A stretch of 64,000 nucleotides of DNA from Chara braunii (GCA_003427395.1 BFEA01000013.1:2867584-2931583); one strand, 5' to 3'. Shown: positions 1,367 to 62,319, numbered from the stretch's first letter. The notes: generated by a model from the sequence alone, not told the origin. Numbers and translations: made by a program.

Positions 1367-4300
1367 CTCTTGGATGGCTTGAATCTTGTCCGACAACGGA
1401 CTGATGCCCTCCGGTGTGACAAAATGGCCCAAGTATTCCAGCTCTTGCAAGACAAATTTGCACTTGTCGCGGTCGGCTTTGTACTTAGGGCGGCGGAGCG
1501 TCAAGATGATCCTCCAGTGTCCGGCTATAGACGAGAATGTCGTCTAAGTAGACCAGCATGAACCGGTCCAGCATCGCAAGAAACTCGTTGGTCATTGCCG
1601 CTTGAAAGGTCGTCGGGGCGTTGGTGAGGCCAAAAGGCATGACCACACACTGGAAATGCCCGTACCCCGTCTTGACTGTGGATTTGTAGCGATCGTTCGG
1701 CCGGATCGAACTCTGATGTTATCCCGACTTCAAATCCAATTTAGAAAAATACTTCGCGCCACCTAATTGCTCAAGAAGATGGTCGATACGAGGAAGAGGC
1801 CCCGCATTCTTGACGGTTTGCGCGTTGAGCTTGCGGTAGTCAATGAACAATCGTAGATCTTTGTTTTTCTTCCGTACGAAGAGAACTGGTGCTCCATATG
1901 AGGAGCTACGAGGGCGGATCCAACCCTTGTCCAACAAGTCATCGAGCTGCGCGGTGAGGACCGTAAGCTCCTCCTCGCTCGTGCAAAAAATGCAACCTTT
2001 CGGTGGCACGACACCGGCCTCAAGAATGATCTCGTGAGAGATCGGCCGATCCGGCACCACACCGGTAGGTGACTCGAAGATGTCGACGAACTCGTCAAGC
2101 AACCGCACCACACGGGGGTCCGAAGACAAGTCCGTGGATGAAGAGTCGGCTACCACGACGGTCTGTAGGAAGCATAGGCCTATCTCATCGGGCTGCTCGT
2201 AAACACAAGTAGCCCAGAATGACTTGGTCGTCACCACTTGGCACCAAATTGAAGGGTGTGGAAGAGTAATAGTACACGACACTTCGGCGCCGAAGGCGTC
2301 CCGAACGGTAAGAGTCCGCCGGTGGAAGTTGACCGTGTGATCCGCACTTGCAAGCCAAGGCATTCCCAAAATAATGTCGAAGTCCGTGTCCAAAATGTCG
2401 AACGTCACCGGTTTGCATGCAAGAGGTGTGAAATATACCGGTACGGCCTCAATGTAGCGGTCGATAAGTTGTTGCGTCCTTCCGTCCACTAACCTGATCG
2501 CCGTCGGGTTTGCCTTCCTCCAAACTTGTGTGCCAAGGCCAGTCCTTTGCATAAAGGCTTGGCTCATGAAATTGCGAGACGCGCCGCTATCCAGCAAAGC
2601 GCTGTAGGACACTTGCCCAACTTGGATGCGGACATAGAGGAGCGATGCGTTGTTGTCATCGTACCGCTGCTTGCGAAACTCGCGGGCCACCTTGGTAACA
2701 TACGCAAGGATGTCCCCCACCGCAGCTTCTTCCTCCATCGGCGAAGTTGGTGGTGCATAGAAGGATAGATACGTGTGAAAATGAGCGCTACGCATTGCGG
2801 TCCCGACAATCAGCCCGTGGTCGGGAGCGGAAGCCATGCGAAATCCTCGGACGTGAGCGGGTCCAATACCTCTATGTTGAACTCGCGCGCCGAATCCCGT
2901 GAAGAACCACTTGAAGACGATAAGTTGCCGTTGTCGGACGGGGAAGATGCCGCACACACGTCTTGTCCTTGAGCACGAGTACCCAGCGTAGGAACGAGCC
3001 AGGCAGCATAGTCCTCGTAAGAATATAGAAGAGGACTATCGACTTTCGCACGTGCCTCGGAACGAAGGGCGGTCACCCGCAAAGTGACCGGTTCGAAGGC
3101 GTCGAGAGTGCCGTCGAGTCACTCCCGACGGTGCTGAAGTTCCCGATTTGCCCTTGCCTTTCAACGGGCAACCCACTGTGTCGTGGAGATCGCTGTTACA
3201 CCACAGACAATAGCGGAATCTCGTGCGTGCCTTGTACGCCTGTTCGGAGAGACCGTAGTGGGACCATGGGGCTCAAGCTGTGCTGTGCCGGGCCTGGGGA
3301 TAGATGCGGAGTTTATCTTCGTCTTGCCGCGTCCTCGGCCTTTGCTAGGGCGGCCACCATCCCGGGCGGCTGCGAGTCTGTCCCGTTCATTGGCAGACAC
3401 GGCCTCACTAGATTGGTCGGTTGGCGTTGTCGTCGCAACCACGACCACTTTTGGTCGATGCCGATCTCTGCTCGGGCCTGTCGCAGACGAACGGTGGAGG
3501 TTCTTAGCCTCCTTGTTCATGACAATAATCTGCACGACCTTGTCGAAGAGCTCCGCCGTTGCCGTCAGGGTGTCCTCGACGTGAGTCAAGGCGTTGCCCA
3601 ACGCCGGACACGACCTCGAGATGAAGTAGTGTTTGACGGCCTTGCCCATTTCAATATCTGGGACGAATATTAAGCGTTGGTACTCGACTATCTCGTCAAC
3701 ACTCGGCAGCGTGCCTTGTTCGAAGGTCGTCAACTTGTCCATTGCCTTGATCTTCGACGGTTCTACTTGGAACTGTTTATGCCACGCCGCCTTTAGATCA
3801 TCCCAGCTGATCTTGGTGTACTAGCCGGTAGCTACTACCCCATACTTGGACAAGAGATTGTCCAACCATGCTTGGCACGCGCCCCCCGACCGGGAGTATA
3901 AGTATGCGTGATGCTTGTCCTCACTGATGTGGTGTAGCTGCAACTTTAGCTCGAACTTGCCGAATCGGGTCCGTCTTCGTCGAATCGCAGAAGATCTCCT
4001 GATCATCGAACCTTGGAGTCGTCTCGTGCGGTGCCGAACTTGGGTTGGCAGCGGCAGCACAGATCCACTGTTCCAATTGTTGTGTGGCGGTTTGCTGTAG
4101 CTGCGTGTCGTCCTTGAGGGTTTCGACATCGATCTCCAATGCATTGAGGCGATCGGAGGTGTTGGAGGAGCTGGCATCGGGGGCGGCGGCGGGTCGTTGC
4201 TCCAGCTGCTGGAGGCGGCTGTTGAGTTGAGCCAACGCGTCGTCGAGGCTGTGGATGTCCTCTTGTTGTGTAATGCATGTTGCCAGGAGATCCGTGAGAT

Positions 4301-13255: not shown

Positions 13256-13964
13256 CTCACCAATGCCGCCGCAGGGAGTACCTGGAGGGAGATAGAGAGA
13301 AGACCAGATGGGGCAACAACACAGGTGGGGAGGGGTGGGATAAATCGCCCAGATAAGGAGCCACTAATCAAAAAAGAAAAGTTTGAACTTTGCAAAAAAA
13401 TACTCGTTTGCAAGTTCAGTAGGCCTCCGAAGTCCCCTGAAGTGCGAAATTATCGATGAGAAAAATTTTGAACTTTCAGACCGCAAATGATTTTCTGATA
13501 AAAGAATTCCGAAAATGAAGTACAATTTTTTTTTTTTTTTGGAATTACACAGATGAGAGTGCGCGCAGTTGGAGAATGATAACTGCAAAAAGGATTCCCG
13601 CACCGTTTTTCAAAAAACGGATTTCGGAATGAAAATATTCCGGATTTTCCAAATAATGGGAAATTGCAAAAGGAAATCGAAATTTTCGAAAAAGAAGATA
13701 TTCCGGATTTTCAACAACGAAATTTTGAATTTTCAGAAGAAAAATGAAATCGGAAATTTCAGATGTTGCGTTATTGCGATTTTCCACAACAGAAATAGTG
13801 AGAAAACAAAATCCACGAAAAGAAAAAAAATTCGATTTCCGGCAGTGAGGTCAAAATCATGATTTTGGGGGCTAACTAGTGTGCTCTAATCAATCAATCA
13901 AGACTAATCAGCTACTCAGTCCCCGCACACGTGTCAGATCAGGTTGTCCTGATTCACGTGCGGT

Positions 13965-13976
13965 GGTCCGATACCA
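13965..13976 (-). promoter_or_regulatory. Primer-binding site of element B (tRNA-iMet-like)
   Basis: TGGTATCGGACC on the minus strand, 2 nt after the 5' LTR end (..TGTAACA gt TGG). Confidence 0.85.
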
Positions 13977-13978
13977 AC

Positions 13979-15894: not shown

Positions 15895-16215
15895 CAACAT
15901 GACATCCTTGGATGACGGTGCAAAAATTTGAAGCATCTCCACCTCGCACCATCATTGGATGACAGTGCAGAAATTTGAAGTGGTCCAGAAGTTTGAAATT
16001 GGGGAGTGAACCTTGCCACCTGCCATGGTTAGGTTCGATCCCCGTTGTTTTGTGGGAACAAACATCCTATTGTTGGGCCGTGGACAAGCTGCCACCGGTA
16101 GAGCATAACACATTTTTTCCAAGGAGGATCCCAAATTTCGATTTGCCTCTGGCGTGGCTCTTTTTTTTTCTAGGAAAACAATAATTTTTCTCCAGGGGGC
16201 CCCAGGGTGGAGACT
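15895..16215. repeat. Dispersed non-coding repeat family; other copies at ~24490-24795 and, inverted and partial, ~27980-28035 (matching 24328-24380)
   Basis: caacatgacatccttgg.tgacggtgc.aaaatttgaagcatctccacctcgcacc...agggtggagact is shared with 24495-24795. Confidence 0.75.
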
Positions 16216-16302: not shown

Positions 16303-16580
16303 TTATGGGTTGTCCTGGGTCTGTGGGTGGGATGACCCAGGCCTAGCGCTGTCTCTTATACACATCTAGATGTGTATAAGAGACAGGGCCTAGCCTGTCA
16401 CCAACCCATTTGGGTGACCCAGGCCTAACATTGACCCGCTCGTCACCCACCCAGGCTGGCTCGCCTAGACCCACCCTCACCCCACCCATGTAAGCTTATC
16501 AAGACCCACACCTGACCAAATGCCTCGTGGGTGGGGTGGGTGTGGGTGGGTGTGGGTCTGGGTACCTGTTGCTCATCTCT
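16303..16580. mobile_element. MITE-like or non-autonomous DNA transposon end; second copy at ~49935-50147
   Basis: Both copies share ACCC/GGGT-rich subterminal repeats and end in gggtacc.gttgctcatct.t. Confidence 0.55.
16349..16386. other. Nextera mate-pair junction adapter (assembly artefact)
   Basis: Exact CTGTCTCTTATACACATCT+AGATGTGTATAAGAGACAG, i.e. two Tn5 mosaic ends back to back. Absent from the homologous repeat copy near 49960. Confidence 0.98.
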
Positions 16581-16666
16581 GTTGTGAGTGGAGCAGGACC
16601 ATCCAGGTTGTTGGACTTATAATTGGGTTAGTGATCACTCTCACGATGTTTCTCTTCTGCCTGCAG

Positions 16667-19600
16667 GTGTTGGGGAATGCTAATGCTCTTTCACAGTCGG
16701 AAGATTGGTCAGCTCTGATTCAAGATGCAAAGGCCCGAAGTTGTTACATTCAAGCTCCTTATGTGCACGGACTGTTCACAGATTCACCGCCGCTGCTACC
16801 TGCTGGCAAGCCTGCACTTTCTCATCTGGGAGGACCTCCTGGTTTTGCAATTCCGGCCGCTTCAAAGCTTGAGAATCCGGATGCTGCACAGGATGTGACC
16901 TCCAGATCCATCCCGAAACGAGAGGGGACAGGCATTGCCCTGGAAATGGAGAGAGTTCTCCCTTCCTCGAAACGAGAGTGCATTGATGGAGGGTCTGGAA
17001 ACGGTGGACAGTGGGCTGGGCAGCTGCACACTGGGGCTGGTATGTGGGGTAATGGGCAGTTACCGTCATGTGGAAGGGGTTTTGCCCAGTTGTGTAGCCC
17101 CAGAGATGTGTGGATCAATCAGTCAGCTGAAGCTGGGGATAGTGGGGGAGTGTTGCGGATATCATTCCCAGCAGCACCGTACACTTTTAAGGCATTTGGG
17201 ATGAATGCTCCCAGTAAAGAAGGAATGAGGGGGCTAGAAAAATGGTCTGATGATGGTGATGGCGGTGGGGGAGACGGAGGAGGAAGAGCAGGTTCTATGG
17301 CAATGGTGGGTGGGCCACACACTGATGGAGACACTGAGGCAGTCAATGGTCCTTCCGAAACCTCGGACTCTCTGTGTGAAAGCAGCATTCATGATTTACA
17401 GCCCACTTCAGGAGGTGGCCCTATCACAGAAAGGGGGCGAGGCCAAGTTTCTGTTGGGGCATTACCTCCGGTATTCAAGGAAAATTTTCAAAACCCAGTA
17501 TCTGGTGAATGGCCTCAGGGAGCAACAGATGGTGTAAGACTTGCACAGTCTGGTGGTGAGAACTGGACTAAAGACAATAATTTAACGGTTGAGAGTGCAA
17601 CTGCACCGCCTTTGGTCAAACTGAATGCTCCTGGGATCACAGCTGCAAGTGTGGAATTGTCTGGATCTCTGGCAAAAACACCGGATTGGAAGGTCCACCA
17701 TTGTGAGATGACACCAACTGCTGATGTGCTATTCCTACCAGAGATGACGCTGAAGCAACCAATTCAGCCCTTGCCAAGCCAGGGGGTATCTTGCGGTTCA
17801 GGATCCTGCATTGCTGTTGACGATGAGAGAGGACCACTTAACCCATCTAGGAGTAGCTCTCCCAATAATCTAGTGGGCCATGTGATGGGGTTGTCACAGA
17901 GCCATAATTGTCCGGATGACAGCAATGGGGACATCAAATTGGGTAACGTTCGCTTTAGCCAGCGAGCTGTGTCGAATCCAGCCTGGAAAGAGGACGTGCT
18001 GAGAATGGCAGCTCTGGATGGGTTCTCTGGTCAGGTTGAAGGCCGGAAGGAATCCTTCACGGGAAGTACCACGGAATCTGTCCAATTCCAGAGGACGGCA
18101 GCAACTGCAGGTCGACAGTGGGGACTAACTACAGCAGATCCCGTCATTAGTGATGACTTGAAACCAATGCCAGTTGCTTCTGCAGCGACTAAGCCGACTG
18201 AGCAGGCTCGCCAGGAACAGGCAGAGGCAGTTGAAACAGACCAGTTATTGTTCTCTCCTGGTGAACGGAAGAAGGAGAGCACGGAAGAGGAAAAATTACC
18301 TGGGGCTGTGCAGCAGTTGCTGCAAGAAACCAACAAGGAGTCTGCAAAGGGAGGAGAGCATTTGTTGGAGCATGGTGCAGGTGAAACGATAACAGGCCAA
18401 CACCAGCCGGGCAAAGAAGACGAGAAGGGAGTTGAGAGAGGTTTTACGTTTGATTTGAACTTGACTGCAGAAGAGAATATGAGGATGACTGATAATGAGG
18501 TGGAGAACTATGTGACGCAGAGGCAGACTGGTTCTGGTGGAAGTGCTCAACCTGAGGAGGTCTGTAAGACAGAACTGTTGCACTCGGACCTTTTGTCTCT
18601 TCAGCTAAATGGGGGAGCGGTCAGTCTCACGTCTGTGTCAAACCATAGTGATGGCAGAAGAGTGGCTCAGCTTGAACCAGAACAAGAAGGTGAAGGACAA
18701 CCTTGTGCCAATTCTCAAGAGGCATCCAGAAACACCCCGAGGAGAGAAGAGACACATCAGGGAATATGGGAGAGTACAGGAGGCAGGACTGAGCCAGATG
18801 CTCATGGCCTGTCTAGGAAACGGACTAGACAATCATTTCTTTCTGATGGGAAAGAGGATGACGTGGGGAGCCACTCTAAGATATTAAATGTGGGACCCAT
18901 TGCCACAAATGATATTGAAGGCCTGGTCATACAGGTATGCTCAAAGGACACTGCCTTGACAGATTGTACCTCTGAAGGTAGAGTGTACTCTGAATGTAGA
19001 GTCCATTTAGATGGTAGAGTTCGGGATGAACCAGATCCCTCTCAAGCTGAAGTTGACAGCAGACGGGGTGGGACAGCAGAAAACATATGGTCAGCATGTT
19101 TATCAGCTACAAGCAGCTGGGTGAGGGGACACAGAATTGGCATGGGAAGGGGAGAAAATGATGACCCTGAGGTAGATGACAAGTTAGACAAGGTTGTTCG
19201 GCAACCTCATGAAAGCAGGTGGGAGGATGGGATTCATGACTCTCATGGTCAGCACGCTGGGGAGACTGGACCGGAGGGTACTGAGATTCCTGGCATACGT
19301 GTTCGACCTCAGATACATTTTGCTAGGAATGATGGGATGTGCTTTGTGGAGCAGCAGGGTTCCCTGCCATCTCTTGATCGTAGAGCGAGAATTTCAGCGG
19401 GGCCTAGTCTCAGGCGTAATGCTCCAGTTCTGTCAGTCGCTGGATTGACAAGGTCCGAGAGGCACTGTTCAGCGAGTGCAGAATGTGTTGGAAGAGATGT
19501 TGGGTCAAGCCAGGGCAACAGCAGGGGAGCAGAAGTAGAAAATGAGTTGGAAGAACTGAAGGACGAAGATTGGAGGCATATTCGGATGGCACACTGCAAA

Positions 19601-20290
19601 ACCCCTGGACAACCGTTGCATGTCAGTCGCAACTTGGGATGGGACAAGGGATGTGGCATGGATCCGGAGTCGTCATCAAGCATTGTAGAGCAGAGGGAAC
19701 AGCAGGGACGAATCTGGAATGAATTTGTGGGAAGGGAGGCAAGGATTAGTCAGATTGCCTGTGGGGGGCCAGTAACATCTGCTCACTGGGGCAAAGAATG
19801 GGAGGGTGTAAAGTTAAGGGATATGTGGCATAGTAATTTGGGGTTGGTACATGGTGTACAACCCTTGGGGATTTGGAGGGAGAACTGGCCTGCTGCTGAA
19901 GGTTCTGCAGGATTACAGAGTTCTGAAGAGGGATCGAACTGTGGATTTCTAAGTTTGCAGGGAGGTCTGGATAAGGTCACCAATGTTGGTGATTGCAGGG
20001 TTCCAGAGCAAGGAGGAAATGCACGGCAAATTATAGTAACAGAACCGGAATCCCTTTCCACCACTGCTGTTAGGGTACTGGGAACAGTTTCTAGTCCGGC
20101 CTTGAGTGCTGGCTTGGGTCCACTTTCAGGGCCAGGACTGGGACCAGCTCCACAACCTCCAGGGATGGCGGGTCAAGGAATGTCTCGAGGTTGGGACTTG
20201 CAGTGGCCACCGATCCCAGGGCAACACATGCAAGAGCCTGAGACTGTGTGTGAAAGGTTTGGCAGGAATCTGGGACCTACTTCGAGTTGA
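16667..20290 (+). CDS. Large coding exon (probably terminal) of a host gene; ~1200 aa, largely disordered, with EAR-like FDLNL and NLS-like RKRTR; possible transcriptional regulator
   Basis: 3.6 kb without a stop codon and no transposon motifs. Pyrimidine tract and acceptor (tttctcttctgcctgcag|GTG) in phase 0 at 16667. The ORF-track start at 16520 lies inside a repeat. Confidence 0.75.
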   Translation: MLGNANALSQSEDWSALIQDAKARSCYIQAPYVHGLFTDSPPLLPAGKPALSHLGGPPGFAIPAASKLENPDAAQDVTSRSIPKREGTGIALEMERVLPSSKRECIDGGSGNGGQWAGQLHTGAGMWGNGQLPSCGRGFAQLCSPRDVWINQSAEAGDSGGVLRISFPAAPYTFKAFGMNAPSKEGMRGLEKWSDDGDGGGGDGGGRAGSMAMVGGPHTDGDTEAVNGPSETSDSLCESSIHDLQPTSGGGPITERGRGQVSVGALPPVFKENFQNPVSGEWPQGATDGVRLAQSGGENWTKDNNLTVESATAPPLVKLNAPGITAASVELSGSLAKTPDWKVHHCEMTPTADVLFLPEMTLKQPIQPLPSQGVSCGSGSCIAVDDERGPLNPSRSSSPNNLVGHVMGLSQSHNCPDDSNGDIKLGNVRFSQRAVSNPAWKEDVLRMAALDGFSGQVEGRKESFTGSTTESVQFQRTAATAGRQWGLTTADPVISDDLKPMPVASAATKPTEQARQEQAEAVETDQLLFSPGERKKESTEEEKLPGAVQQLLQETNKESAKGGEHLLEHGAGETITGQHQPGKEDEKGVERGFTFDLNLTAEENMRMTDNEVENYVTQRQTGSGGSAQPEEVCKTELLHSDLLSLQLNGGAVSLTSVSNHSDGRRVAQLEPEQEGEGQPCANSQEASRNTPRREETHQGIWESTGGRTEPDAHGLSRKRTRQSFLSDGKEDDVGSHSKILNVGPIATNDIEGLVIQVCSKDTALTDCTSEGRVYSECRVHLDGRVRDEPDPSQAEVDSRRGGTAENIWSACLSATSSWVRGHRIGMGRGENDDPEVDDKLDKVVRQPHESRWEDGIHDSHGQHAGETGPEGTEIPGIRVRPQIHFARNDGMCFVEQQGSLPSLDRRARISAGPSLRRNAPVLSVAGLTRSERHCSASAECVGRDVGSSQGNSRGAEVENELEELKDEDWRHIRMAHCKTPGQPLHVSRNLGWDKGCGMDPESSSSIVEQREQQGRIWNEFVGREARISQIACGGPVTSAHWGKEWEGVKLRDMWHSNLGLVHGVQPLGIWRENWPAAEGSAGLQSSEEGSNCGFLSLQGGLDKVTNVGDCRVPEQGGNARQIIVTEPESLSTTAVRVLGTVSSPALSAGLGPLSGPGLGPAPQPPGMAGQGMSRGWDLQWPPIPGQHMQEPETVCERFGRNLGPTSS

Positions 20291-21394: not shown

Positions 21395-21683
21395 GCCAGA
21401 TTTGAAGATAAGATTTGCGAAGGGTTTGTCTGACCATCAGGTCCTCATGTAGGTAGTCCTGTTGCATTGCCTTCCAGGCGTCATGGGTTCGGGTTCTAAT
21501 CTCATCTTCTATCGCTTCTTGTGCTTGTTGGAGTCCAAACTGGTGGTCTTTCCTTTCGAAAGAACACCTAGCTCTCCAGGCCAGCATCAACACCTGCAGC
21601 CTCATGTAGGCAAAGAGATTGGTGGCAAAAGCCGTCCATCGCTTCGTCAGGTGCTGGTTTTTGTTGAGCAGGAGGAGACCCAG
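21395..21683 (-). repeat. 289-bp near-identical duplicate of L1 ORF2 3' segment 28813-29101
   Basis: Same translation MRLQVLMLAWRARCSF..; about three mismatches seen by eye. Confidence 0.9.
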
Positions 21684-22434
21684 GTCCTATGATAATCGCG
21701 TTTTCTCTCCATGACTGTGCCAATATTGCTTTCTTTATGCTCTCTACCTCACTGCACTTGTGTTCTGATGCTTTTTGGTTCTGAAGGCTTAAGCAGCTTG
21801 CAGAACAAACTGGTGGCAGAGATGCTTGTCCTGGGTTGTGGGTAATCTCCTCTTGTGCTGGCTAGGGTCTGGTGCAAATTTATGCAGAGTTTTGCGTGGA
21901 TGGGTGCATGGTAACCAGAACAGATAAATGGGAATGAAGGTTAACAGGGTTTACAATCTAAATTGATAATGGGAACCCTGGTAGTTAAAGGACACAAACA
22001 GGAGGGCGCAAACAAAAAAGAACGTAAAAGAATTGGGGTTACTGCGGTGACACAGAAGGGTGAAAAGCAGGGAAGTGAATGGCAGACCGGTTAGGTGAGG
22101 TGATGGGTCTGCAGACCGGTAAACCAGAATGGGACATGCATTGATGTACCTGATAACTGCATCCTGAATGGGAGCTGACTTCCGACCAGGAGATTGAGAC
22201 TTATTTCTTAGAAAAATAAAGGATGGAGAGGATAAGTACGGGAAGCTAGTCTTTTTAACGTCTTTTGTCCTGCCTCCTCCCTCTGCCACAAGTCTAGTTC
22301 TTAATCTTATACTATCTATATGATTGTTCTCAGCAGCAGTCTGTGTTAGTGCCCATTGTGGCCTTCCGGTCGTGGATCTGGCGGCTGAGATTCGTCCTCC
22401 AACACTTGAGATTTATAATGCGGCACCTTGCGGC

Positions 22435-22596: not shown

Positions 22597-25284
22597 CGGG
22601 GACCTGAACCGCGAAACCCCTCAACACTTTCTTTTGCCGATACCTGGTAGGGTGTTTGGCAGACAAGTGGATAGTCTGCCTGGTCGAGAAATGTGTCAGT
22701 GAACGCAGAGAGCCTGTGAACGTCAGAAGCGTTAGAGACCGTCAGAGTGTGTTAGGGATTCTGAGTGATTGTCAGTGATCGTCAGGACTGGTTTGCCAGG
22801 ATGGATGTTGTGGGTAAATGAACGTGGTCAGCTGGTCAGTTCGGTGCAATGAGAAGGAAAAGTGTAGAAATGGTCAAATTTGAAATGTCAAAATCAAATG
22901 ATGTGAATGATTGTCTGGCACTTACTCTGTGACAGCTTCTGACAATGCTGGTTGCTTCTTTTTTATCGGCAGGGATGCCCGCAAGTCACTCCCTGAGCCG
23001 TCTGAGTCTCTCGATGTTGGGTCTTCCGATTGTGTTCTTATCCTGTCCGGCATTGTGTTTGTTATTTTCTGGGGCTTGATGCGCATGTTTGGTTATTGGT
23101 TTGGATGTGATCATTGATGGTGGGCTTATTGCGGGGACGGGATGGGTGGAAGAGCAGGTGAGGGATTGTATGTTGCTGTAGATGAGTTGGTACTACCTGT
23201 AATTGTTGAAATGGAGATTGCGCGATGTAGAATGGAAGCAGAGTGGGGCTGGTTGTCTGGGTGTAGATAATTGTGGGCCGATGTTGTTAATAACGAAACA
23301 AAAGAAAAACCCACTGCGGTGATGCCCCATGTGAGGATATCGGTTTACATTTGTGTTACCGTTGGGTGCCTAGCATCCGATCTGGAAATCGGACGGTGAG
23401 GCCATTGAAAAATACTGAAACGAGAATGAAACGTGAAACATGGGTGAGCGGTTGAACGGCTGGGTTTAAGGTGAGTTGTTAGATTATGCTCGAGGCACGG
23501 CTGTAGTTCTTAGGGGGGGGAGGGGCGAGGGGGGGGCTTAAATTGACTAGTGGGATTTCTGATTTTTTATTGTTGATTATGAAGATCAACGGCTGAAAAT
23601 GAAATTGGAGCAAATGGGACTTGGCCGCCAGATTTGTAAGTGTGAATTTAGTCGGAGTGGTGATGTGCGGGATTAATGTAAAGTGATCGTGGTTAGATAA
23701 AAGAAATGAAAAGACTTGAATAGAAACGTTTGTTGGGAGGGACTGGAAGACGCACTGGACACAAATTTATAGCTTACCGAACCAGCGACCGGCCAGCCTA
23801 CTCTGGATGATATAGTCCACTTGGCGGTTCCAACAATGCAATGGCTGTAAGTCCGGACACAAGGACACAACATTTCATATTTGCCGGGAGCAGGAGGAGA
23901 TGATCCTGCACTTGTTTGTGGAATGTCCATGCATCGGAAATTTTTGGAGATGCTGGAAGGTCTGGCTGCCAAGGAGGGGCTGCCTTTCTGCCCCTTTCAT
24001 AGCCAGGTCCCCAAACATGGGGCCATCCTATTGGGCCCATCAAGGAGAACCAACCCACCCAAGTGTTTTTCAAAAATTTCCTCCCACACCCAACCCGACC
24101 GTCACCCGTAAAAAACCTTAACCCCTACCCACCCACACCCCCGAGAACAAGATTACCTGCCCACACCCGGTACCCATCCGCACCCGCCCGTTCACACACC
24201 ATTATTGAGGAGAGATCTCTACTAAAGGGAGGGGCATCACATTTGCAGCCCCATGGAAAAAGTAGCTCTCGGACAGGAAGATTAATGACCATAGCCCAGG
24301 TACATGGTACTACAGTGCTGTTTCCACGGGACGCTGGACCAGGTTTCCAGCAGGTGTTGCTCCCCACCAATAGATGGACAGCCCACCAGCCATGGCCTCA
24401 ATCCTGGCGGTTCTCTTACCACGGCCAGGATAGTGGACTTGCGAAAGGGCTCTTCCAAAAAAAAAAAAAAAATGATTTACACACACCATAGTAGCAACAT
24501 GACATCCTTGGGTGACGGTGCGAAAATTTGAAGCATCTCCACCTCGCACCGTCACTGGATGAAGTGCTGCACAAGTTTGAAATTGGGGAGCGAACCTTGC
24601 CACCTCCTGCGGTTAGGTTTGATCCCCATTGTTTTAATGCAAACGAACATCCTGTTGTTGGGCCATGGTCCAGCTGCTACCGGTAGAGCGCAACACATTT
24701 TTTCAAGGAGGATCCCAATTTGGATTTGCCACTGGTGTGGCTCTCTTTTTTTTTTAGGAAAACTTTTCTCCCCAGGGGGGGCGAGGGTGGAGACTCGTCC
24801 GTTTGACGGCGCACATGCGGGTATTCGACGTTTTTTGGAAGTCACACCAGTGCAGTCTCGTCCGTTTGACGGCGCACATGCAGGAGAAAGCTAAAGTCCT
24901 CACCCGGATGAGTGGCGCACGCAGTGTGTCGACAGCGAGGCGAAACTCTGCGCGGCCTGGGGGTGCACGGCGTCACAGGCCAGCGGGACACAAGACCCCT
25001 CGTCTCCTTACATTTTTTGCGTGTCTTCATGTTTATTGCCTTTGACTTTGCGATCGGTTCCGAGCTGACATCGAGACCGACAGGCCTGGCGTAGTTGCTA
25101 CGACATCGGACAAAGGGCGCTGGCGACAATCCTGTATCCGCCCGCCTTGAACCCGGATTGAAGAGGCCAACGTGCGGGAAAGTGGTGGGGTCCATGTCTG
25201 TGGCTTCCCTTGCTACCCACTTGAAGAGTGCCGATAGCCTAAAGTGAAAGGGAATTGGAGAACCTTCCAAGCGCCTGTGCGGGC

Positions 25285-25620
25285 TGCAGCCAGAGAACGC
25301 CGGAGGTTGCCGCGGATGGACCATTTGCCAGTCACGATCTGCTGTGAGAGGTTTAAGTGTGAGCGCACCACATATAAGACGGTGCACTGCGTCGGTAGCT
25401 CGGCGGGGATATGCCCATTCAAGGGTGGTGACAGCCCCTTGGGCGGAGGTAAGTTGTACCTCGCATGTCCCTATCCTGTCGGAAGGGCTCGCGAGAGGCA
25501 TGGCGCACTCAGCTGAAGTGGTGACAAAAGCTCCATTGCACCTCGATTAAGGATAAATTCCTACCTGAAATCTTGTGTGACGCGGCCGGGAGGGTCCCCC
25601 AACGGGAAAGATGCGCTTTA
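25285..25620 (+). repeat. Conserved segment of an unclassified element; further copies at 49565-49915 (+) and ~53215-53345 (-)
   Basis: Shared core gtc.gt.gct......ggata.gcc......gtggtga.a.cccct......gtaagttgtacctc. Confidence 0.8.
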
Positions 25621-26306
25621 TTGGTGGCGCCATTGTCGGGGATCTCGGTTGCCTACCGGGGTCCTTAGAGATCGAACCCAAGTTATTGGCATGCCTTGCA
25701 TATGTGGATGTGGTTTAGGATGAGTGCGGTGGTATCAGCATTGTTGGGTGCGTCTATTTTTGAAGTAAGCTCTATTAATAATTGTCAGAGCTACAAGGCT
25801 AGTTGACTCATTGTGTGAGTGTTGTGCTAAGCCTGCTTTGGGGAGTAATTAAGTTAACTTGAGGCGTCCTCCCCTAGTCAATAGAGCCTCACCTCAGAGG
25901 AGGTTTCTGATATGCGAGTGTCATGGATGAGGGGATGACTGATGAGCGTGAAGTGGGGGGTTTAATTGTAAAAGTTTGTCCATGAGCTAAGATTGAGTTA
26001 GGGTAGATAGGTATTGTGATGAGTATTGTGCTTGGACTTTTTGGTGGTGTCAGTTGTCGATAAGTTGAGTTACTTAGGGGATCGTTTAGCTGTATGTACC
26101 AATAAAACTTAAGAAGTAGTGGTTATTTAGCTAGAGCTTTGACTAGTCCGAACAGAGGCCTATGTTTTGTGTATATGTAATATATATATGTGATGGGGTG
26201 TGAACCGACAGTCTGTAGAGTTTTCCATCTGGTGTGGGTGAGTGATAGTCTACTTTGATTTTGGTTAAGGTGGATTATCACTTAGTGTAATCAGTGAGGG
26301 GATTCT

Positions 26307-26366
26307 ACAGACTGTTGAGGGTTCAGCCTCCTGATGAGTCGGTGAAACTCCAACGAAACAGTTTGT
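26307..26366 (+). ncRNA. Type III hammerhead ribozyme
   Basis: acagacu-GUU^-gagg(guucag)ccuc-CUGAUGA-gucgg(ugaaacu)ccaac-GAAA-caguuugu. Complete core; stem I 4 bp, stem II 4 of 5 bp, stem III 9 bp plus a distal gagggg/ccccuc pairing. Confidence 0.88.
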
Positions 26367-26372
26367 CACAGC

Positions 26373-26507
26373 CCCTCGTTTGTTGTCCTCTTCTCCCTCT
26401 CTGCCTACGGTTTACCGGGCAGTTCTATTTGACGATACAGTCCCTCGTTTGTTGTCCTCTTCTCTCTCTCTGCCTACGGTTTACCGGGCAGTTCTGTTTG
26501 TGACGAT
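26373..26507 (+). repeat. 69-bp tandem duplication immediately 3' of the hammerhead
   Basis: ccctcgtttgttgtcctcttctc.ctctctgcctacggtttaccgggcagttct.ttt..gacgata starts at 26373 and 26442. Confidence 0.9.
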
Positions 26508-29129
26508 ATATATATATATATATTGTTTCTTATGGCGGATTTATTTTGGTTCTCGATACGTGTGCTCTTTGTTGTATTTTTTTTATGTTTGATTGATGGC
26601 GTATGTATGGATTGCCTTTCGAGAGGATATAGACTCTGCATGAAACCCACGCCTGGCATGGGACGAGGGGTGAAAAGGGTGACTCGTTTTTGTTGGAAGG
26701 TGGTTCTTTCTGAAGGAAGTTAGTCAGCGTGTATAATATGTCTTCAGTAGAAGTGCATTCTTGAATTTTTACTCCCTCGTCAAAGCTTAAGGAAGCAGTT
26801 ATCAGTCTAAAAAATGATAGTGAGACTCGCGCTGGAACTTTGTTTATGGTCTATTAGTGCGGTGTTATTATCTTTCCTTTGAATAGGAAAGTAACTACAT
26901 TGTCAGATAAGAGAGGAGGAAAGGGTTTGTTCCCTTACTTAAACATTGATGGTAAAGTAGGGCGACTACTGCTTAGCCAGAGTGGGTGTAGAGTGACGAC
27001 CTATGCTAAACTTTCGCTAGGTAGGGCCACCATACTTAGAGAGGTGTGAGACCGTCACTTGTTGTCTTAATAGGTATGAGTAGGGGTGTCGTGCTAACCT
27101 CGATGGGTTAAGTAAGGTGTAAGCGTTGGAAACAGAGAGGGTCGCAGTGAGGCTTGATCTTTAGAGCGGGGCTCAGAAGTCGAGATGGTATGTCATAAGG
27201 ATTACATCGTCCCTCTGTATTATATGTTTCGCTTAAGAGTTGAAGGGGTAGCAATTGTATGATGTTATTTACTAATTGTTAGTCCTATTTTCGTTTGCCT
27301 TATAGAAATTGCACTGTGTTTTGCACAAGCGGTTAACAAGGACCCCCACTTTTCAGCCCTGGTTAACCCTCTCAACCCTGAAAAGTGCATTGGAGATAAT
27401 TTTTTTTAAGTTTTTTTTTTTTTTTTTTTTTGCCCTGTTTTATTTTTGGTCAAGGTCTGTGTGTGCCAAGTTTTGTGTTTGTTGGGGTCTTGGAGCTGAC
27501 CGCTTTGGCTAGCCCTGAAAATCCTGAAAACTGAAACGAGTGAATTTGGCATGAAAACACACTTTTGCCTTGCTGTTTTATAGTTTTTTGAAGTTCTTTT
27601 TTTAATTTTGTTTTTGTAAGTAGTTTGTATGATATCCACTCTATGAATTGGTGACACGTTTGGTTAAAATGACCCTTGGGTTTTGTTATAAATGGCCTGA
27701 CAAGTGGTCTGAAAATTGAGGCCTCCGTTAATCGTCTCTTCTTTTCGGTTACAACCCTAGCAAACAATTTGGATTCATGTGAATTATTACTGTAAGTATA
27801 TGCTATCTATCGTGGGTTGAACTGCATTTTGGATTCATGGATGGAGTATCCACCCATGTGACATATGTATATTATATCTTTCGGATTCTTTCCTTGATTT
27901 TTTTTTGGGGGTGGGGTGGGAACTCCCGCAGAATAGTTAGGGGTGCTGGTAAGAGCAGACACCAGTAACATTCGTCAAGGGCTCCATCTATTGGTGGGGA
28001 GCGGCACTTGCTGGAAATCGAGTCCAGCGTCCCTATTATTACGGAAATTGTTTGTAGAGACATTTAGGAAGGTGACAGAAGGACGACAGAAAGATGAGAG
28101 AAGACCTAATTCTACAGCTTTGAAGCGATTGCCCACGGAGGTGGGCGCTCAGAATGGTAGTACTCGCGGGACTCGGACTGTTAATGTTCCTTCTGGTCAC
28201 ACGTTTGCCATTGCAGGCAACCTATCCCCCCATTTTCCCTACCACCTCCCTTTATAGAGTAGTTACATCTTTGCCACTGTTGGCAACCTGTCCCCATTTC
28301 CCCCCCGCCACCTCCCTTTGTTGAGCTGGAGTGCAGGTCCAGCCTCACCAGCTCGATCCCCAAGGCGTTAATGTCCTCTAGTCCCCTGGCTGCTGCTGTT
28401 TGTTGTGATTGCCTCCCAATATCTGTGGACATCCACATTTCCTATCCACACTTCGTATATCTTATTTTCCTTCTGTTGTTGTGCAATTCTTCGCCTGGTC
28501 TTCGCCTGCTCTGTCCGGCATGCTGTTGATCCCAGCGCTGCTGTTGTCCATTTAGGCGGCCACTTTGTGGATGGGAGGGGGATTGGGAGGGAAGGCAATT
28601 GGGGGAGCGGAGGGGGTGGGGGAGGCATTTCTGTCACGGTTGAAGATGACGTCAGTTCAGAAGGGCCGAAATTAGCACGAAATCAGATTGGAGATATGAG
28701 ACTTGAAAGTCTCTCAACGGTCTTCTTTGCCAAGTGTACTCTGTTGTTCTCCATGGTTTTCAGGCTATGTTAGTCCCATCCCCGAGTTCAGAGAAGATTT
28801 GATTGGGGTCCTGCCAGATTTGAAGATAAGATTTGCGAAGGGTTTGTCTGACCATCGGGTCCTCATGTAGGTAGTCCTGTTGCATTGCCTTCCAGGCGTC
28901 ATGGGTTCGGGTTCTAATCTCATCTTCTATCGCTTGTTGTGCTTGTTGGAGTCCAAACTGGTGGTCTTTCCTTTCGAAAGAACACCTAGCTCTCCAGGCC
29001 AGCATCAACACCTGCAGCCTCATGTAGGCAAAGAGATTGGTGGCAAAAGTCGTCCATCGCTTCGTCAGGTGCTGGTTTTTGTTGAGCAGGAGGAGACCCA
29101 GTACCTACGGGATGTGGAAACCAGCTAGG

Positions 29130-29360
29130 GCATGAGTTTTGTTATATTTGGGTATGTATATACCTACTTCTCTAAAAGCTCGCCCTTCGCGTCGAAAACT
29201 AGATTCAATGGCAACAATTCTATAAGTTGGTTATTAGGATAGGTCCCCCCCCCTAGAGAACCGTACGTGAGCTCTTTCAACTCATACGGCTCAAGTGATT
29301 TATCTTCATTTTCTCATTCTAGAAAAGAATATAAAATTCAAACGAAACAATCATATCAGA
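29130..29360 (-). pseudogene. rps16: NUPT: 3' end of the plastid rps16 group II intron (domains V-VI) plus start of exon 2
   Basis: Domain V GAGCCGTATGAGTTGAAAGAGCTCACGTACGGTTC at 29292-29258; domain VI ends ..cctatcctAAT. Exon from 29232 reads (Q)PTYRIVAIESSFRREGRAFREVG, in the phase-1 position typical of the rps16 intron. Confidence 0.85.
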
Positions 29361-29371
29361 CGAGTAATCTC

Positions 29372-29510
29372 TGACCTTATCACTTCACTATATGCGGGAA
29401 AGTCCTAACCTATTTATTGAATGAATTTCAATATACAATGGATAATCCGCAGGAAACCAACATATGTCTGTGTAGGATCCTCAGAGACTATACGTGAAGA
29501 GTCCGAACAA
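29372..29510 (+). other. Organellar (probably mitochondrial) group I intron core fragment
   Basis: P/Q/R-like elements atgcgggaaagtcct, ataatccgcaggaaacc and cctcagagactatacgtgaag. Confidence 0.7.
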
Positions 29511-30345: not shown

Positions 30346-33300
30346 CGAATACCATATAACCTAATTGGCTACAAGTAAAATAAGCAATAACCCTTTTTAA
30401 ATCATTTTGTAACTATCTTATATATTTCTTTTATCTTTATGGATATAGAATTTTGTTTTTCATTCCTGTATTGCTTTCTATCTTTCACCTCCATATGTGG
30501 GCAACCATCGAGCATGTCAGCAGGCAATGTTCCAGTGTTGCTCTGGCCGGCTGAGTGGTCCTACCGCAGTAGGTGCAGATGGGAGATGGTATACTTTTTT
30601 GCTCGAGGTATGTTTTTGACATGAGCCAGTCCGGTGTGGGGAGGCAGCGATGCAAGATCTGCCATTGCAGTCATCTGAGGTTCGTGGGCATATAATTTTG
30701 GAGTATGTGGCCTAGGACAGGTTTTGCAAAAGGCTCGCGTCCGCAGGTGAGTCACACTCCCATCTCTGTGGTAGTCTGTGGTCGGTGGGCAATTCCCGGG
30801 GGGATGCTTTGTACCCCCTTCACTGTATAGTCCCACATATGCATGGGCTTTTGGTCAGGCCATTCCCACTCATCTGGGTTGAATGGCAGCCTGGCTACTG
30901 GCGATAAGGGTTCGTATGCACAGTAGCCATTGTCTTGATCTCCGACCACCCTTACTATCAACAGACTTCCCCACCCTACAGTATCCAAGTCTTCATTCCT
31001 CACGAGTTTAGAGAAGCGGGTCCCAGGCAGGGCAGGGCCTTAAGCTTCCAGTGCACATCTCCCACTAACATTCGTTTGCACTCTGTACAGAGTGGGCAGG
31101 ACAGGGAGGTCAGCATATCGAACGACCCAGTCATGCTGTTGTATCGTGGGGCCTGCAGTGAGGGCACCGAGCTAGGCCAGGGGCATTGCCTCTGTTAATT
31201 GGTAAAGTTTTTCATCCACTTTCTTCACATACTTCAGTCTGGCCTGCAGCTGTTGTGGGGTAGCCCAGTTGTTCACTTTCGGGTCCCACAGACCCCTGAC
31301 AATATATAAATCCCGTTTTTTGCCCAGATCAACCAATGTGAGACAGTGGTGAGCAGAAAGGGGTGGTTTGTGTGGTCCAGGATGTGGGGGTTACCGAGAA
31401 GTGGTTGTCTCCATATCGTATGCCATCTATTCAGTGGTTGTTTTTGTACGGGGCCCCTTTTCTCCAAAGTTTGATCATGAAGGGCCAAGGGGATCATTTG
31501 CGATATCTCAACAGACTGCTTGTGCATGTCGGCCTGGGCTCGGAATCGTCCAATGTCTATTGGTCAGCCATTGGAATGGGTGCACTCCATTTGCGCCCAG
31601 CGATTGCGGGGTCAGGTTAGCTATTTGTATGCAGGTCAGGGGTCCCCAGGGGATATCGTTCCCTATTAACAGTCTAACCAACACTTTGAAAATCAATGCT
31701 TCACTTTCCGTTTGTGGATCAAGTATCCCAAGTCCCCCTTTGACTCTTAGTTGGGTGAGAATGTCCCAGCTTACTCCGTTCATGCAACATTGGGAATTTG
31801 ATTTGTTTTTCCACAGGTAAGTCGTGAGCACTCTTTTGAGCTTGGCATACTGCTGTTTTGTCAGCGGCCATACTGCCAGCTTGTAGCAGATCGCTACGAG
31901 AACAACGTTGTTAATTGCCAAGGCCCAGCCCACCAATGAGGTTTGGAGACCTTCCCACTTTGCCAGACGATCTATTGTCATGTTCTCCAGCATGTCCCCA
32001 TGGTCAGGTGGGGGCCCAACGTCGTTAGCCTAACGCCCAGGATCTGGATAGCTTCGTGCTCTGTCTGCCATTTAACTGCCGATTGCGACGGTGGGGGCTG
32101 GTCACGAGGACACAACCACCAGCCTTTCGTTTTGGAGCCCTAGTTCACTTTTATATTTGCCGCAAGCGAGAACTGATGTATATCTCGCGTGAGGGTCTGG
32201 ATGTTGTCGGTGTCTTCCCGCATGAGAACGGTGAGATCATCTGCAAACAGTGACGTCATCGGGATGAGGTGCTCTGGTAGGTCGGGGATGGGCACCTTGC
32301 TAATTGAGGATGGGCCCTGATCAATCATGCGAGAGTCTCCATCACAATAACGAAGAGTAGCGGCGCAATAGGATTTTCCTGTCGCACTGATCTCTGAAGC
32401 GTGATGGGGGGCGAAAGGTGGCCATTAATCATGATGTTCGTGGTGGCCGATTTGTGGAGGAGGCAAATCCAACGGCAGAACGACGGTCCAAAATTAATCT
32501 TGGCTAGGCACATGTCTAAGAAGTCCCAGTCAACGTGGTCGTACGCCTTTTCGAAATCTATGAACAGAATCACCGCCGACACTTTTCGGTGTCTGGCGTA
32601 TTTGATGGTCTCGTTAACTAGGAGGATGTTATCTTCGATGTTGCGATTGGGCATAACCCAGTCTGGTCAGGATGAATCAACATGTTCATCAGGGGTAGCA
32701 AGCGGTTGGTCAGTGCCTTAGCCACCATTTTATAGGGGACCGGGAGTAGGGTGATGGGTATATAGTTCCTTATATCCTCTTTGTCCCCTTTTTTATAGAG
32801 GAGTGTGGTAACTCCTTGCCCGATCATCCCCCCAAAGGAGCCCTCTGTCTTAATTGCCGTACTGTAGTTTATGAGGTCGTCCTGAAGCAGCTCCCAGAAG
32901 TGCACCCAAAATTCTTTGGGGAAGGAGTCGACGCTTGGTGTGTTCTCATCATCCATACCTGTCAAGGCCTCCCATACTTCAGCAAAGGAGATTGGCGCTT
33001 CCAGCAGTTGTCTTTGATCCGGTGTGAGGTGTGGTTGGACTGCTTGTAACAAGTCCTCTCTTGCTCGTAGGACCTCGGCCGGGTCTTTTTCGGGAGTCTG
33101 GGAGGTGAACAAATACCGATAGTATTGGGATGCATAGTCCGCTATTGCGTATGCGTTAGAGGTCACCCGGGCATCGTCATGGAGGGCGTGTTTGAGTCTA
33201 GGGATTGTAGCAGGCCTGGTTCTGGCTTTGGCCTTGCGAAAGAAGACTTCGCCATTGTTCCGTCAATATGGTTTTTTTTTATTTTGTCCTGAATCCTCCA

Positions 33301-34429
33301 TGCCTGTGTTTGACTTTCTATGTAGGCCTGGAGGTGATCTCGCGCTTCTTGCAATTTATGGAATGAGGGTTGGTGTAATGGGTTGTCCATCTGTGTGTCA
33401 TCCCATTCTTCCAGCTCTTGCATGAGTCTGTCGAGAATGGCTTTACGATCCCTTGCATATTGGATGAAAAATTTATTGGCCCTTTCCCTTAGTCGGGCTA
33501 TGCCTTCATTGAACCAGGCCACCCTATCCCCCGATTCCGGTTTTTGGGTCTACCAGCAGAGCCATAATTCATTGACCAACTCTTTGAACTTGGGTAGGGA
33601 TAGCAATGAGGTGTTAAATTTGTAGAACCCTCGTCCCCTGTTGATGTGGGTGTGGAAAGATAGCCCCAATGTGATCATTATGTGGTCAAAGGACTTGCAA
33701 GGGCTGATAGCAGTTATTTCAGCAGTAGAGACCAGGCCAAGCAAGTCTTTGGAGACGAGTGTAAGGTCGATGCTTGAGTTCGCTAGACCACGATCACCTC
33801 TGGAGGACAGGCAGGTGTAGGCCCTTTGGGTCGGGTGCAGCATTTTGTATGCATCTTCTAAGCCCCTATCGTCCATCAGTTGCCTAAGCATGAGGACGTC
33901 CGGGCCCAAGTGCGGCAGCGATGAAGCTTGTGGGTCTTGTCGTTGCGATGTTGACCTTTGATCTATCCAGGGTTGTGTTGAAGTCCACCGCCATTATGAT
34001 CGGGGTGTCATCCAAGAGGTGCTGGAGTAGGGTAAGCCAAAGGTCCACCCTTTGCACGGGGTCATTGGGGGCGTAGATGTTGACGAGATAAAACTCGTCT
34101 TCCTCATATGCCAGCTTCAAACATGCCCTCCTGCCCTGCGTGTGGTCGTGTCGTGCTGATACTGGTCTGAGCCTCGAGGAAGAGGGATCCAGATTGCCAC
34201 ACCTGTTGATGCCCTTTCCGTTGCAGGTGCCTGATACGAAGTGTAGGGCCAAATAACTCTTCCTTTTTCCACATGCGGTGGGGTGTCTGGGAGGTGCGTT
34301 TCGTGGACACACACCGCGTCCGACCAATTGTTGGTATCGGGACATTTAAGCATTGTCCATATGGCGTGTTTTTTTTTCCAGCGTCGCCTGTATGAGTCCA
34401 TTAACATTGAGTGACCGTATATCTATGTC

Positions 34430-55384: not shown

Positions 55385-56590
55385 GAGTGTACCCTGCACC
55401 TTCCACCACTTTCTTTCTCCACCTCCATTTCTCATCCACCAAAGCCAAACAACTTCCACCTCGTTCCTCTTCCACCTCTATCACCCATCCGCCATACCCA
55501 AACACCTTGAACCTTCTTCCTCCACCTCCATCACCCATCCACTATAGGTAAGCACATTCCACCTTCTTTCTCCCCCACCTCCATCACCCATCACCCATCT
55601 GCCATAGCCAAGCACCTTCTACATTCTTCCTCCTCCTCCTCCATCACCCATTCACCACAACCAAGCACCTTTCACCTTCTTCCTTCTCCGCCTCCATCAC
55701 TCATCCACCGTAGCCGAGCAACTTCCACCTTCTTCCTCCTCCAACCCATCCACCATACCCGAGTATCTTCCACCTTCTTCCTCCTCCACCTCCATCACCC
55801 ATTTGCCATTGCCAAGCACCATGCACATTCTTTCTCCTCCACGTCCATCACCCATCTGCCCTAGCCAAGCACCTTCCACCTTCTTCCTCTTCTACCTCGA
55901 TCACCCATCCACCATAGCCAAACACCTTTGCACCTTTTTCCTCCTCCACCTCCATCACTCATCCGCCCTTGCGAAGCACCTTCCAGCTTCTTCCTCCACC
56001 TCCATCACCCATCCCCCATAGCCAAGCACCTTTCATCGTCCTCCTCCGTCCCCCATGGCCAAACATGTAACACTCCTTCCTCCTCCACCTCCATCACCCA
56101 CCCACCATAGCCAACCACCTTGCACCTTTTTCCTCCTCCATATCCATCACCCATCCACCATAGCGAAATACCTTTCATGTTCTTCCTGCTCCATCTCCAT
56201 CACCCATCAGCCATAGCCAAACATTTTTCACCCTCTCCCTCCTCCATCTCCATCAACCATAAGTCATAACCTAGAACGTTTAACCTCCTTCCTCCTCCAT
56301 CTCTATCACCCATCGGCCATACCCAAGCACCTTGCACCTTCTTCCTCCTCCCTCTCCCTCTCCCATCCGCCATAACCAAGCACCTTCCACCTTCTTCCTC
56401 CTCCACCTCCATCACTCATCCACCATAGCCAAGCACTTTCCACCTCCCTCCTCCTCCATCTGCATCACCCATCCACTATAGCCAAGCACCTTCGATCCTT
56501 CCTCCTCCTCCTTGATCACCCATCGGCCATAGCCAAGCACCTTGCACCTTCGTCCTCATCCGACTCATTGTCCGTCAGCCATAGCCAGGC
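55385..56590. repeat. Minisatellite with a ~55-60-bp C/T-rich unit, about 20 diverged copies
   Basis: Recurrent caccttcttcctcctccacctccatcacccatccaccatagccaagcacctt. Confidence 0.92.
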
Positions 56591-56689
56591 GCCTTTTTCT
56601 ACCTTGTCCTCCTTAAGGCCTGGGGAATCTCCCTTGGGAGGGGGGATGAGCTAGGTAGGCGTTTGGTTTGAACCTAGTGGGTCTTTCTT

Positions 56690-62260: not shown

Positions 62261-62319
62261 TCTCATTTTTTGTCTTGCCGTTTTGGTGATGGTTAGTGCT
62301 AGATTAACTTTGATATTTA

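Follow-up and report, generated by a model that had tools for sequence, protein, structure and literature searches.

Two copies of a probable non-coding retroposon with a type III hammerhead motif at a (TA)n site of Chara braunii

Hammerhead ribozymes of typical Penelope-like elements (PLEs) are minimal type I motifs, which are thought to work as dimers; PLEs with hammerheads were reportedly described by Cervera and de la Pena in 2014. In Chara braunii, two groups of Chlamys-type PLEs carry canonical hammerheads, one of them at the 3′ end, and Chlamys-type elements are biased towards insertion at microsatellites, become truncated at the 5′ side and occur in tandem or inverted arrangement (Craig et al. 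2021, PMC8557442). Plant retrozymes are built differently: two LTRs of 300–400 bp, each with a hammerhead, a tRNA-Met PBS, a PPT and 4-bp TSDs, together with dependence on Ty3 machinery and the formation of circular RNA (Cervera, Urbina & de la Pena 2016, PMC4918200). Sm-alpha of Schistosoma and satellite 2 of newts are short, non-autonomous hammerhead repeats without PBS or PPT, probably mobilized by non-LTR elements; their hammerheads are of type I, and they usually form tandem multimers yielding circular RNA (PMC4918200). The Avsunviroidae and viroid-like satellite RNAs, finally, are autonomous or helper-dependent RNA replicons with no DNA stage and with ribozymes in one or both polarities.

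The locus described here lies in a window of 64,000 nt of DNA from the stonewort alga C. braunii (assembly GCA_003427395.1, BFEA01000013.1:2867584-2931583), to whose first letter all coordinates refer. Positions 26193–26507 probably represent two copies of a short, non-coding and very abundant C. braunii retroposon that carries a type III hammerhead, is inserted into (TA)n by target priming, and is locked by an arm of its own RNA. The element resembles plant retrozymes in being non-coding and retro-mobile, in having a type III hammerhead of the plant/viroid kind, and in folding into an RNA rod that disfavors the ribozyme; in contrast to them, it has one hammerhead and no LTR, PBS or TSD, its 3′ end is fixed, its copies are truncated at the 5′ side, and its targets are (TA)n. 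With Chlamys-2_cBra and PLE-X it shares the host and the style of insertion, but for Chlamys elements the targets on record are (CA)n and (C)n (PMC8557442). Unlike PLEs in general, the Chara copies have no RT/EN ORF and measure at most 245 nt, and their motif is a complete type III hammerhead with closed helices I and II, accompanied by an antisense lock. From Sm-alpha and newt satellite 2, which are likewise short and non-autonomous, it differs in hammerhead type, and those repeats have not been described as targeting (TA)n or as carrying an antisense arm. It shares with Avsunviroidae and the satellite RNAs a type III hammerhead within a G.U-containing rod or branched fold that disfavors catalysis; unlike them, it exists as genomic DNA copies with a ribozyme of one polarity, a common 3′ end and no sign of permuted circular templates. 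In the searchable literature, C. braunii and hammerheads are treated together in Craig et al. 2021 only, so the short type III element appears undescribed there.

The hammerhead at 26309–26364 (+ strand) is a genuine type III motif, and the anatomy given for it in the earlier note (core, three stems, a GUU triplet, a cut after 26316 and complementary loops) is present in the sequence in every part. By direct reading, the core motifs CUGAUGA and GAAA occupy 26331–26337 and 26355–26358; U26315 is paired with A26358, position 17 is U26316, a base other than G, and cleavage is predicted between U26316 and G26317. Helix III (26309–26315 / 26358–26364) comprises 7 bp, one being G.U, and is prolonged by an outer stem, GAGGGG/CCCCUC (26296–26301 / 26372–26377). 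Helix I (26317–26320 / 26327–26330; 4 bp) carries the loop GUUCAG and ends on a G.G opposition, and helix II (26338–26342 / 26350–26354; five positions) carries the loop UGAAACU and is interrupted in this copy by a C26340.A26352 mismatch; the earlier note was silent on both irregularities. Helices I and II are thus closed by loops and III is open, and helix II is perfect in two intact sister copies.

Against Rfam RF00008, the motif scored 38.0 bits (E = 1.3e-4 for the whole window and 1.4e-6 in a local search), which is below the gathering score of 48.5, as are the 45.8 bits reached by each of the intact sister ribozymes (L008:2141-2196 and L008:43459-43514). It was the sole Rfam hammerhead in the window at E<=1. 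When both strands of 442 kb were searched with a relaxed type III descriptor, only the window motif and the two sister copies were retrieved, with zero false positives; thus, the motif is not a chance match. When the Chara motif was combined with three independent hammerheads, the RNAalifold consensus recovered the three helices with 6 compensatory pairs.

Sister copies were sought in 11 chunks of the same assembly (loci L006–L016; 377,906 nt, 329,316 of them non-N), which had been picked via C. braunii protein matches to a Ty3 integrase ORF of the window and are consequently biased towards Ty3 genes. This ORF matches about 55 C. braunii proteins at 51–92% identity (the best 22 at 80–90%); the window itself is repeat-rich eukaryotic nuclear DNA with Ty3/chromovirus remnants. 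With the element as query, blastn found nine further copies, 91–97% identical, six of the nine in the single locus L008, two in L014 and one in L010; inside the window, it found none besides the two adjacent units, termed win_A and win_B. Nine more copies in ~330 kb bear out the suspicion that the motif belongs to a repeated, non-coding retroelement family. Extrapolated from 11 copies in ~393 kb, the genome of 1.75 Gb would hold ~5x10^4, a value that the bias of the sample restricts to an order of magnitude (10^4 to 10^5).

As delimited by blastn and the alignment of copies, win_A (26193–26437, + strand; 245 nt, subfamily A) is the longest of the 11 sampled copies. Directly upstream of it lies an imperfect (TA)n run (26172–26192), probably a remnant of the target microsatellite, so that its start, too, adjoins TA-rich sequence. 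The region 25600–26192 was not found repeated in the sampled loci, and extending the fold to 26000–26437 paired 26000–26024 with the C/U-rich tract described below, at a z-score that was not better (−4.75 vs −4.76). The 3′ terminus is identical in all copies, namely the equivalent of 26437 in the sequence TTTG(TG)A(C/T)GAT, and is adjoined by (TA)n in every copy except win_A, where win_B comes next. The 5′ ends, in contrast to this fixed terminus, vary. The ten informative starts correspond to 26193 (the window copy), 26221, 26251, 26316/7, 26323, 26324, 26327, 26327, 26338 and about 26368; one additional end at 26327 adjoins an assembly gap and was left out. Upstream of the informative copies, a TA-rich simple repeat was present in 8 of 10, with a mixed GATA/TA repeat for L010. 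Copies also occur in pairs, in tandem at L008:43270-43589 and tail-to-tail at L008:18445-18670.

All copies retain a 3′ module (26365–26437, + strand) that stands out by near-invariant alignment columns and consists of a C/U-rich tract, a hairpin (26401–26422) and the terminal GACGAT(A); only the shortest copy, win_B, lacks its first few bases. The 22-mer of the hairpin recurs without change in the two window units and six more copies, and the module is presumed to be the recognition or priming end for the reverse transcriptase. The element thus combines one type III hammerhead, a fixed 3′ end, varied 5′ truncation and (TA)n sites, with no ORF, LTRs, PBS or TSD found. Fixed 3′ end, varied truncation and (TA)n flanks together point to target-primed reverse transcription, not to LTR-type integration. 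The earlier description as a Penelope-like or retrozyme-like family accordingly divides: the insertion is in PLE style (microsatellite target, 5′ truncation, tandem and inverted pairs), but the retrozyme features that were tested all failed.

What had been read as a 69-bp tandem duplication is an array in its periodicity but not in its origin. Tandem Repeats Finder reported a 69-nt unit in 1.9 copies (26368–26500, 95% matches), and the second unit corresponds to win_B (26438–26507, + strand), a 5′-truncated copy of 70 nt that belongs to subfamily B and lies head-to-tail with win_A. The two units are distinguished at three marker positions (C/T, A/G and a TG indel). The markers of win_A (C, A, no TG) are those of L008_2051 and L008_18445, and the markers of win_B (T, G, TG present) are those of L008_43399, L014_1122, L008_18670rc and L008_33308. 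Since the units bear the markers of two subfamilies found elsewhere in the genome, win_B is a separate copy and not a local duplication; it is likely to have been joined to win_A through a template jump or a second hit at the same microsatellite. A (TA)n run at 26506–26524 (direct reading) is either the tail of the element or target microsatellite. The T-rich tract that had been noticed behind the repeat exists as a G/T-rich tract past this (TA)n, but it is flank and not element because other copies are followed by unrelated sequence after their (TA)n.

Upstream of the ribozyme, the earlier note had missed an antisense arm. Positions 26206–26259 pair with 26264–26317 in a long hairpin (26206–26317, + strand) of 49 bp, of which 13 are G.U, without a single A.C opposition; its energy is −64.7 kcal/mol for the + strand, compared with −28.6 for the − strand. 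The 13:0 wobble asymmetry argues for a constraint at the RNA level on the sense strand of the element. The partner strand of the arm, 26264–26317, takes in the 5′ strand of helix III and the cut-site base U26316, and the extreme 5′ end of win_A can pair alternatively with 26366–26375 or with helix I. For the whole window copy, the rod is predicted at −100.0 kcal/mol and a fold with the hammerhead helices enforced at −84.2, the ribozyme fold being ~16 kcal/mol less stable than the rod. For the 5′-truncated copy L008:43399-43589, which is devoid of the arm base, the MFE structure is the active hammerhead fold. The complete arm is confined to the window copy among those sampled (from 26221 onward, its sequence is also contained in L008:2051-2269), and win_A begins where base-pairing in the rod comes to an end. 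Because the arm is transcribed ahead of the ribozyme, full-length RNA should stay inactive, and by folding over the ribozyme the arm should keep the window copy switched off.

In addition to its predicted lock, the window ribozyme appears to be slightly damaged. At position 26352, the window has A, whereas 7 of the 9 other copies covering the site have G, completing the helix II strand CCGAC; of the remaining two, L014_1931 has A as in the window and L014_1122 reads CUGAC. Differences between copies are mostly CpG transitions in the alignment. The helix II mismatch, which breaks the third pair, is most readily taken as a private CpG-to-CpA change, and the G in 7 of 9 other copies indicates that it arose after insertion. 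The GUU triplet, on the other hand, is common to every copy that reaches that site and is therefore a family trait; it is permitted by the NUH rule, although rare among natural hammerheads. The combination of helix II mismatch and rod lock suggests that the window copy is slightly decayed and locked and is not an active ribozyme gene.

Whether the ribozyme acts in the life cycle of the family can be judged from where the copies begin. Five of the ten informative 5′ ends fall into a 12-nt stretch that begins with U26316, immediately 5′ of the cut, and ends with C26327 (scan-statistic P = 0.005 if ends are modeled as uniform and 0.02 if lengths are modeled as exponential). Within the cluster, one end (L010) lies at the cut site within 1 nt, and four lie 6–10 nt downstream. 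This distribution fits the copying of cleaved RNA minus a few terminal bases, but the four ends 6–10 nt past the cut could also reflect stalling of the reverse transcriptase at helix I instead of cleavage. Three copies run through the cut site, so uncut RNA is evidently copied as well.

A target-primed retroposon would account for these observations as follows. RNA of the element would be copied through target-primed reverse transcription, with its (UA)n tail annealing to a nicked (TA)n target, by a reverse transcriptase supplied in trans, most plausibly from a PLE of the Chlamys type; tandem pairs such as that of the window would result from template jumping or repeated hits. By cutting between U26316 and G26317, the hammerhead would release the 3′ module from longer transcripts. 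In full-length RNA, the G.U-rich 5′ arm, which is made first, would engage the cut site and the 5′ strand of helix III, or else helix I, and the inactive rod thus formed would keep master RNAs from being cut, as happens in viroids and retrozymes. Several points weigh against this reading. No reverse transcriptase partner was found, the GIY-YIG motif being absent from 442 kb; among published targets, (TA)n is reported for Naiads and not for Chlamys elements; a single copy begins within 1 nt of the cut site; the sample is biased, consisting of loci with Ty3 genes and with 6 of 9 copies in one locus; and since the arm precedes the ribozyme, full-length RNA has no evident kinetic window in which to cleave.

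The most serious alternative, which is possible but doubtful, is that the copies are not an element of their own but extremely 5′-truncated 3′ ends of an autonomous C. braunii PLE, such as Chlamys-2_cBra. The latter has a 3′ hammerhead, and such elements are on record as very numerous in C. braunii, frequently 5′-truncated, and present also as inverted copies and incomplete tandems (Craig et al. 2021, PMC8557442), which agrees with 11 copies that share a 3′ end and differ only in 5′ extent. Against this, no copy of the 11 exceeds 245 nt; the longest stops at TA-rich sequence, with no RT homology upstream, and 442 kb contain no GIY-YIG motif against 11 occurrences of the short element. The 5′ end of win_A, furthermore, matches the limit of rod base-pairing. 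The RT-like remnants that the earlier note had suspected at 25850–26160 (MDE, DFL, GYLARA) did not hold up: the tripeptides lie in different frames with stops, and none of the 8 stop-free pieces had a Pfam match at E<=10. No Pfam-matching ORF was found upstream of or within the copy, and a spurious 69-aa ORF across the element had no match in an index of 5.8 billion proteins. As regards a SINE-type head, neither a tRNA nor an Rfam small-RNA match was found, and the T4 runs at 26221–26224 and 26259–26262 would, judging from the sequence, tend to terminate Pol III.

Somewhat less probable still is the proposal that the ribozyme is stabilized by kissing of loop 1 (UUCA, 26322–26325) with loop 2 (UGAA, 26343–26346) and that this contact defines the family. 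The two tetranucleotides are indeed Watson-Crick complementary over 4 bp, the complementarity is kept in the three other copies having loop 1, helices I and II, of 4 and 5 bp, would place the loops next to each other, and Fig. 1 of PMC4918200 depicts natural hammerheads with Watson-Crick contacts between their loops. However, complementarity of at least 4 bp arises by chance in 3.5–6% of random loop pairs of these sizes, and copies 91–97% identical do not offer loops that vary informatively (loop 2 in the three other loop-1 copies is UGAAACU, but UGACACU in L010). Covariation in stems and loops equaled that of shuffles, the sole double change consisting of two CpG transitions in a dead copy. 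Loop 2, moreover, follows the general Rfam type III consensus UGAaA: a phage hammerhead with identical helix II and loop 2 has AUA as loop 1, two metagenomic hammerheads with UGAAAUU have GCUA or UUAAAU, and none of these phage and metagenomic loop pairs is complementary over 4 bp.

The phage hammerheads just mentioned (IMG/VR contigs L017 and L018) are identical to the Chara motif over a block of 29 nt, from CUGAUGA through GAAAC, and metagenome contigs L002–L005 share the signature GUC..UGAAA..GAC with it. Their helices I and III, loop 1 and context are unrelated, and they have a GUC cut site instead of the GUU of Chara; the phage hammerhead is located between two phage ORFs. Transfer was considered for the 29-mer match of core and helix II to the two phage contigs and rejected, as the flanks are unrelated; the match is taken as convergence within the type III class. 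Scanning metagenomes with the hammerhead pattern gave 5 unrelated type III motifs and no copy of the family; viral contigs contained no match to either of two patterns, helix I with the core and the 3′ hairpin, and a scan of a genome contig collection also gave 0 matches.

That the motif is a fortuitous or long-dead look-alike of a hammerhead with no role in the life cycle is very improbable. It is true that the motif stays below the Rfam gathering score even when intact (45.8 vs 48.5), that its GUU triplet is unusual for natural hammerheads, and that the ribozyme is locked by the rod. But 13 of 13 core nucleotides and the three helices are kept in the family consensus, a search of 442 kb with the relaxed descriptor was free of false positives, 5′ ends are concentrated at the cut site, and the region masked by the strand-specific, G.U-rich arm is precisely the substrate strand.

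Identity with a plant-type LTR retrozyme or its solo LTR, to which the type III motif, the plant-like sequence, the lack of coding capacity and the stable RNA rod might point, is scarcely credible, given a single hammerhead per unit, no direct repeats of 300–400 bp around it, (TA)n flanks without a 4-bp TSD, and a fixed 3′ end with 5′ truncation unlike LTR-type integration. The common 3′ end of all DNA copies also argues against permuted circular templates. The only direct repeats nearby, of 295 nt (21395–21689 / 28813–29107), were considered as LTRs and rejected: they are 7.4 kb apart and lack TG..CA ends, a TSD and a ribozyme. No match to a tRNA-Met PBS was found near the element within 2 mismatches. 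The earlier statement that no LTR or PBS is visible is thus upheld on both counts.

For the locus itself, the result is modest, namely one slightly decayed copy, which nevertheless contributes the full antisense arm, the tandem of two subfamilies and a private mutation that can be dated. Its wider meaning lies in the family. Type III hammerheads of plants have been tied to LTR retrozymes, PLEs are noted for motifs that are minimal and of type I, and the Chara element, which belongs to a streptophyte alga, joins both worlds; the proposal that retrozymes descend from Penelope-like elements (PMC5680766) is thereby made testable. The strand-specific antisense lock would be a simple natural case of a ribozyme held off by its own transcript. 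Tentatively, and with less confidence than the reading of the locus as two target-primed copies, the family may be a non-LTR, probably Penelope-like-mobilized type III hammerhead retroposon with a built-in antisense switch. If this is true, the G.U-rich arm would act as a regulated switch of conformation and set the proportion between master RNA that stays uncut and 3′ modules that are cleaved and ready for retroposition, and C. braunii, a close algal relative of land plants, would harbor a living intermediate on the route that has been proposed to lead from the hammerheads of PLEs to the retrozymes of plants and to viroid-like RNAs.

An intergenic type III hammerhead is present on each of two phage contigs from IMG/VR (L017, positions 3334-3386, minus strand; L018, positions 3874-3936, plus strand). 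When compared with the intact version of the Chara family, that is, with sister copies free of the helix II mismatch of the window copy win_A, the phage hammerheads proved identical over a 29-nt block comprising core, helix II and loop 2, whereas helices I and III and every flank were unrelated. Within the window, a second hammerhead-like core (CUGAUGA ... GAAAC) lies at positions 143-205 of the minus strand. It is unrelated to the hammerhead element family, and Rfam returned no match for it at E≤1. No Penelope-type ORF was seen between positions 205 and 1700, where the ORFs present are Ty3 reverse transcriptase (RT) fragments.

An ORF of 1256 aa, in which no Pfam domain was found, lies on a G-rich strand (16520-20290, plus strand). 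The region upstream of this ORF recurs within the window (15895-16215 resembles 24495-24795, and 16393-16578 resembles 49962-50147), and a further repeat pair was noted together with it (25289-25600 and 49572-49894). These repeats suggest that an uncharacterised repeat family adjoins the hammerhead element. The element itself sits between two inverted arms of 51 nt (24328-24378 and 27983-28033), which are 88% complementary and 3.6 kb apart; they could be the terminal inverted repeats of a DNA transposon or, alternatively, two inverted repeat fragments.

A group II intron domain V/VI was matched at 29233-29294 (minus strand); its 52.4 bits exceed the gathering score, which is 40. Weaker matches to the plastid ndhA/ndhB and clpP introns accompany it (29254-29454). 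These matches mark an organelle-derived insert within nuclear DNA. Two tandem arrays were also observed in the window. One is a satellite with a period of ∼172 nt and units 88-93% alike, which occupies 62281-64000 and so reaches the end of the window; the other has a period of ∼53 nt and 75-78% identity (55390-56595).

At L008, a locus of the same C. braunii assembly with six copies of the hammerhead element, a U6 snRNA gene or retro-copy was detected (13876-13978, minus strand; 88.2 bits). At 33270-33409 of this locus, plastid-like sequence is fused directly to an element copy whose truncation point is the first base of helix II. The plastid-like part is an antisense tRNA T-arm-like sequence (GGATTCGAACC) and weakly matches the Rfam model of the plastid psbI-rps4 3′-UTR (33.8 bits); the junction may represent a template-switch chimera. 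At 18445-18670 of L008, a long inverted repeat is made up of two truncated copies that were inserted tail-to-tail into a single (TA)n site; miRNA-precursor models of Rfam match this inverted repeat below threshold (MIR1023, 60.7 bits against 90). Tail-to-tail pairs of this kind could be sources of hairpin RNA.
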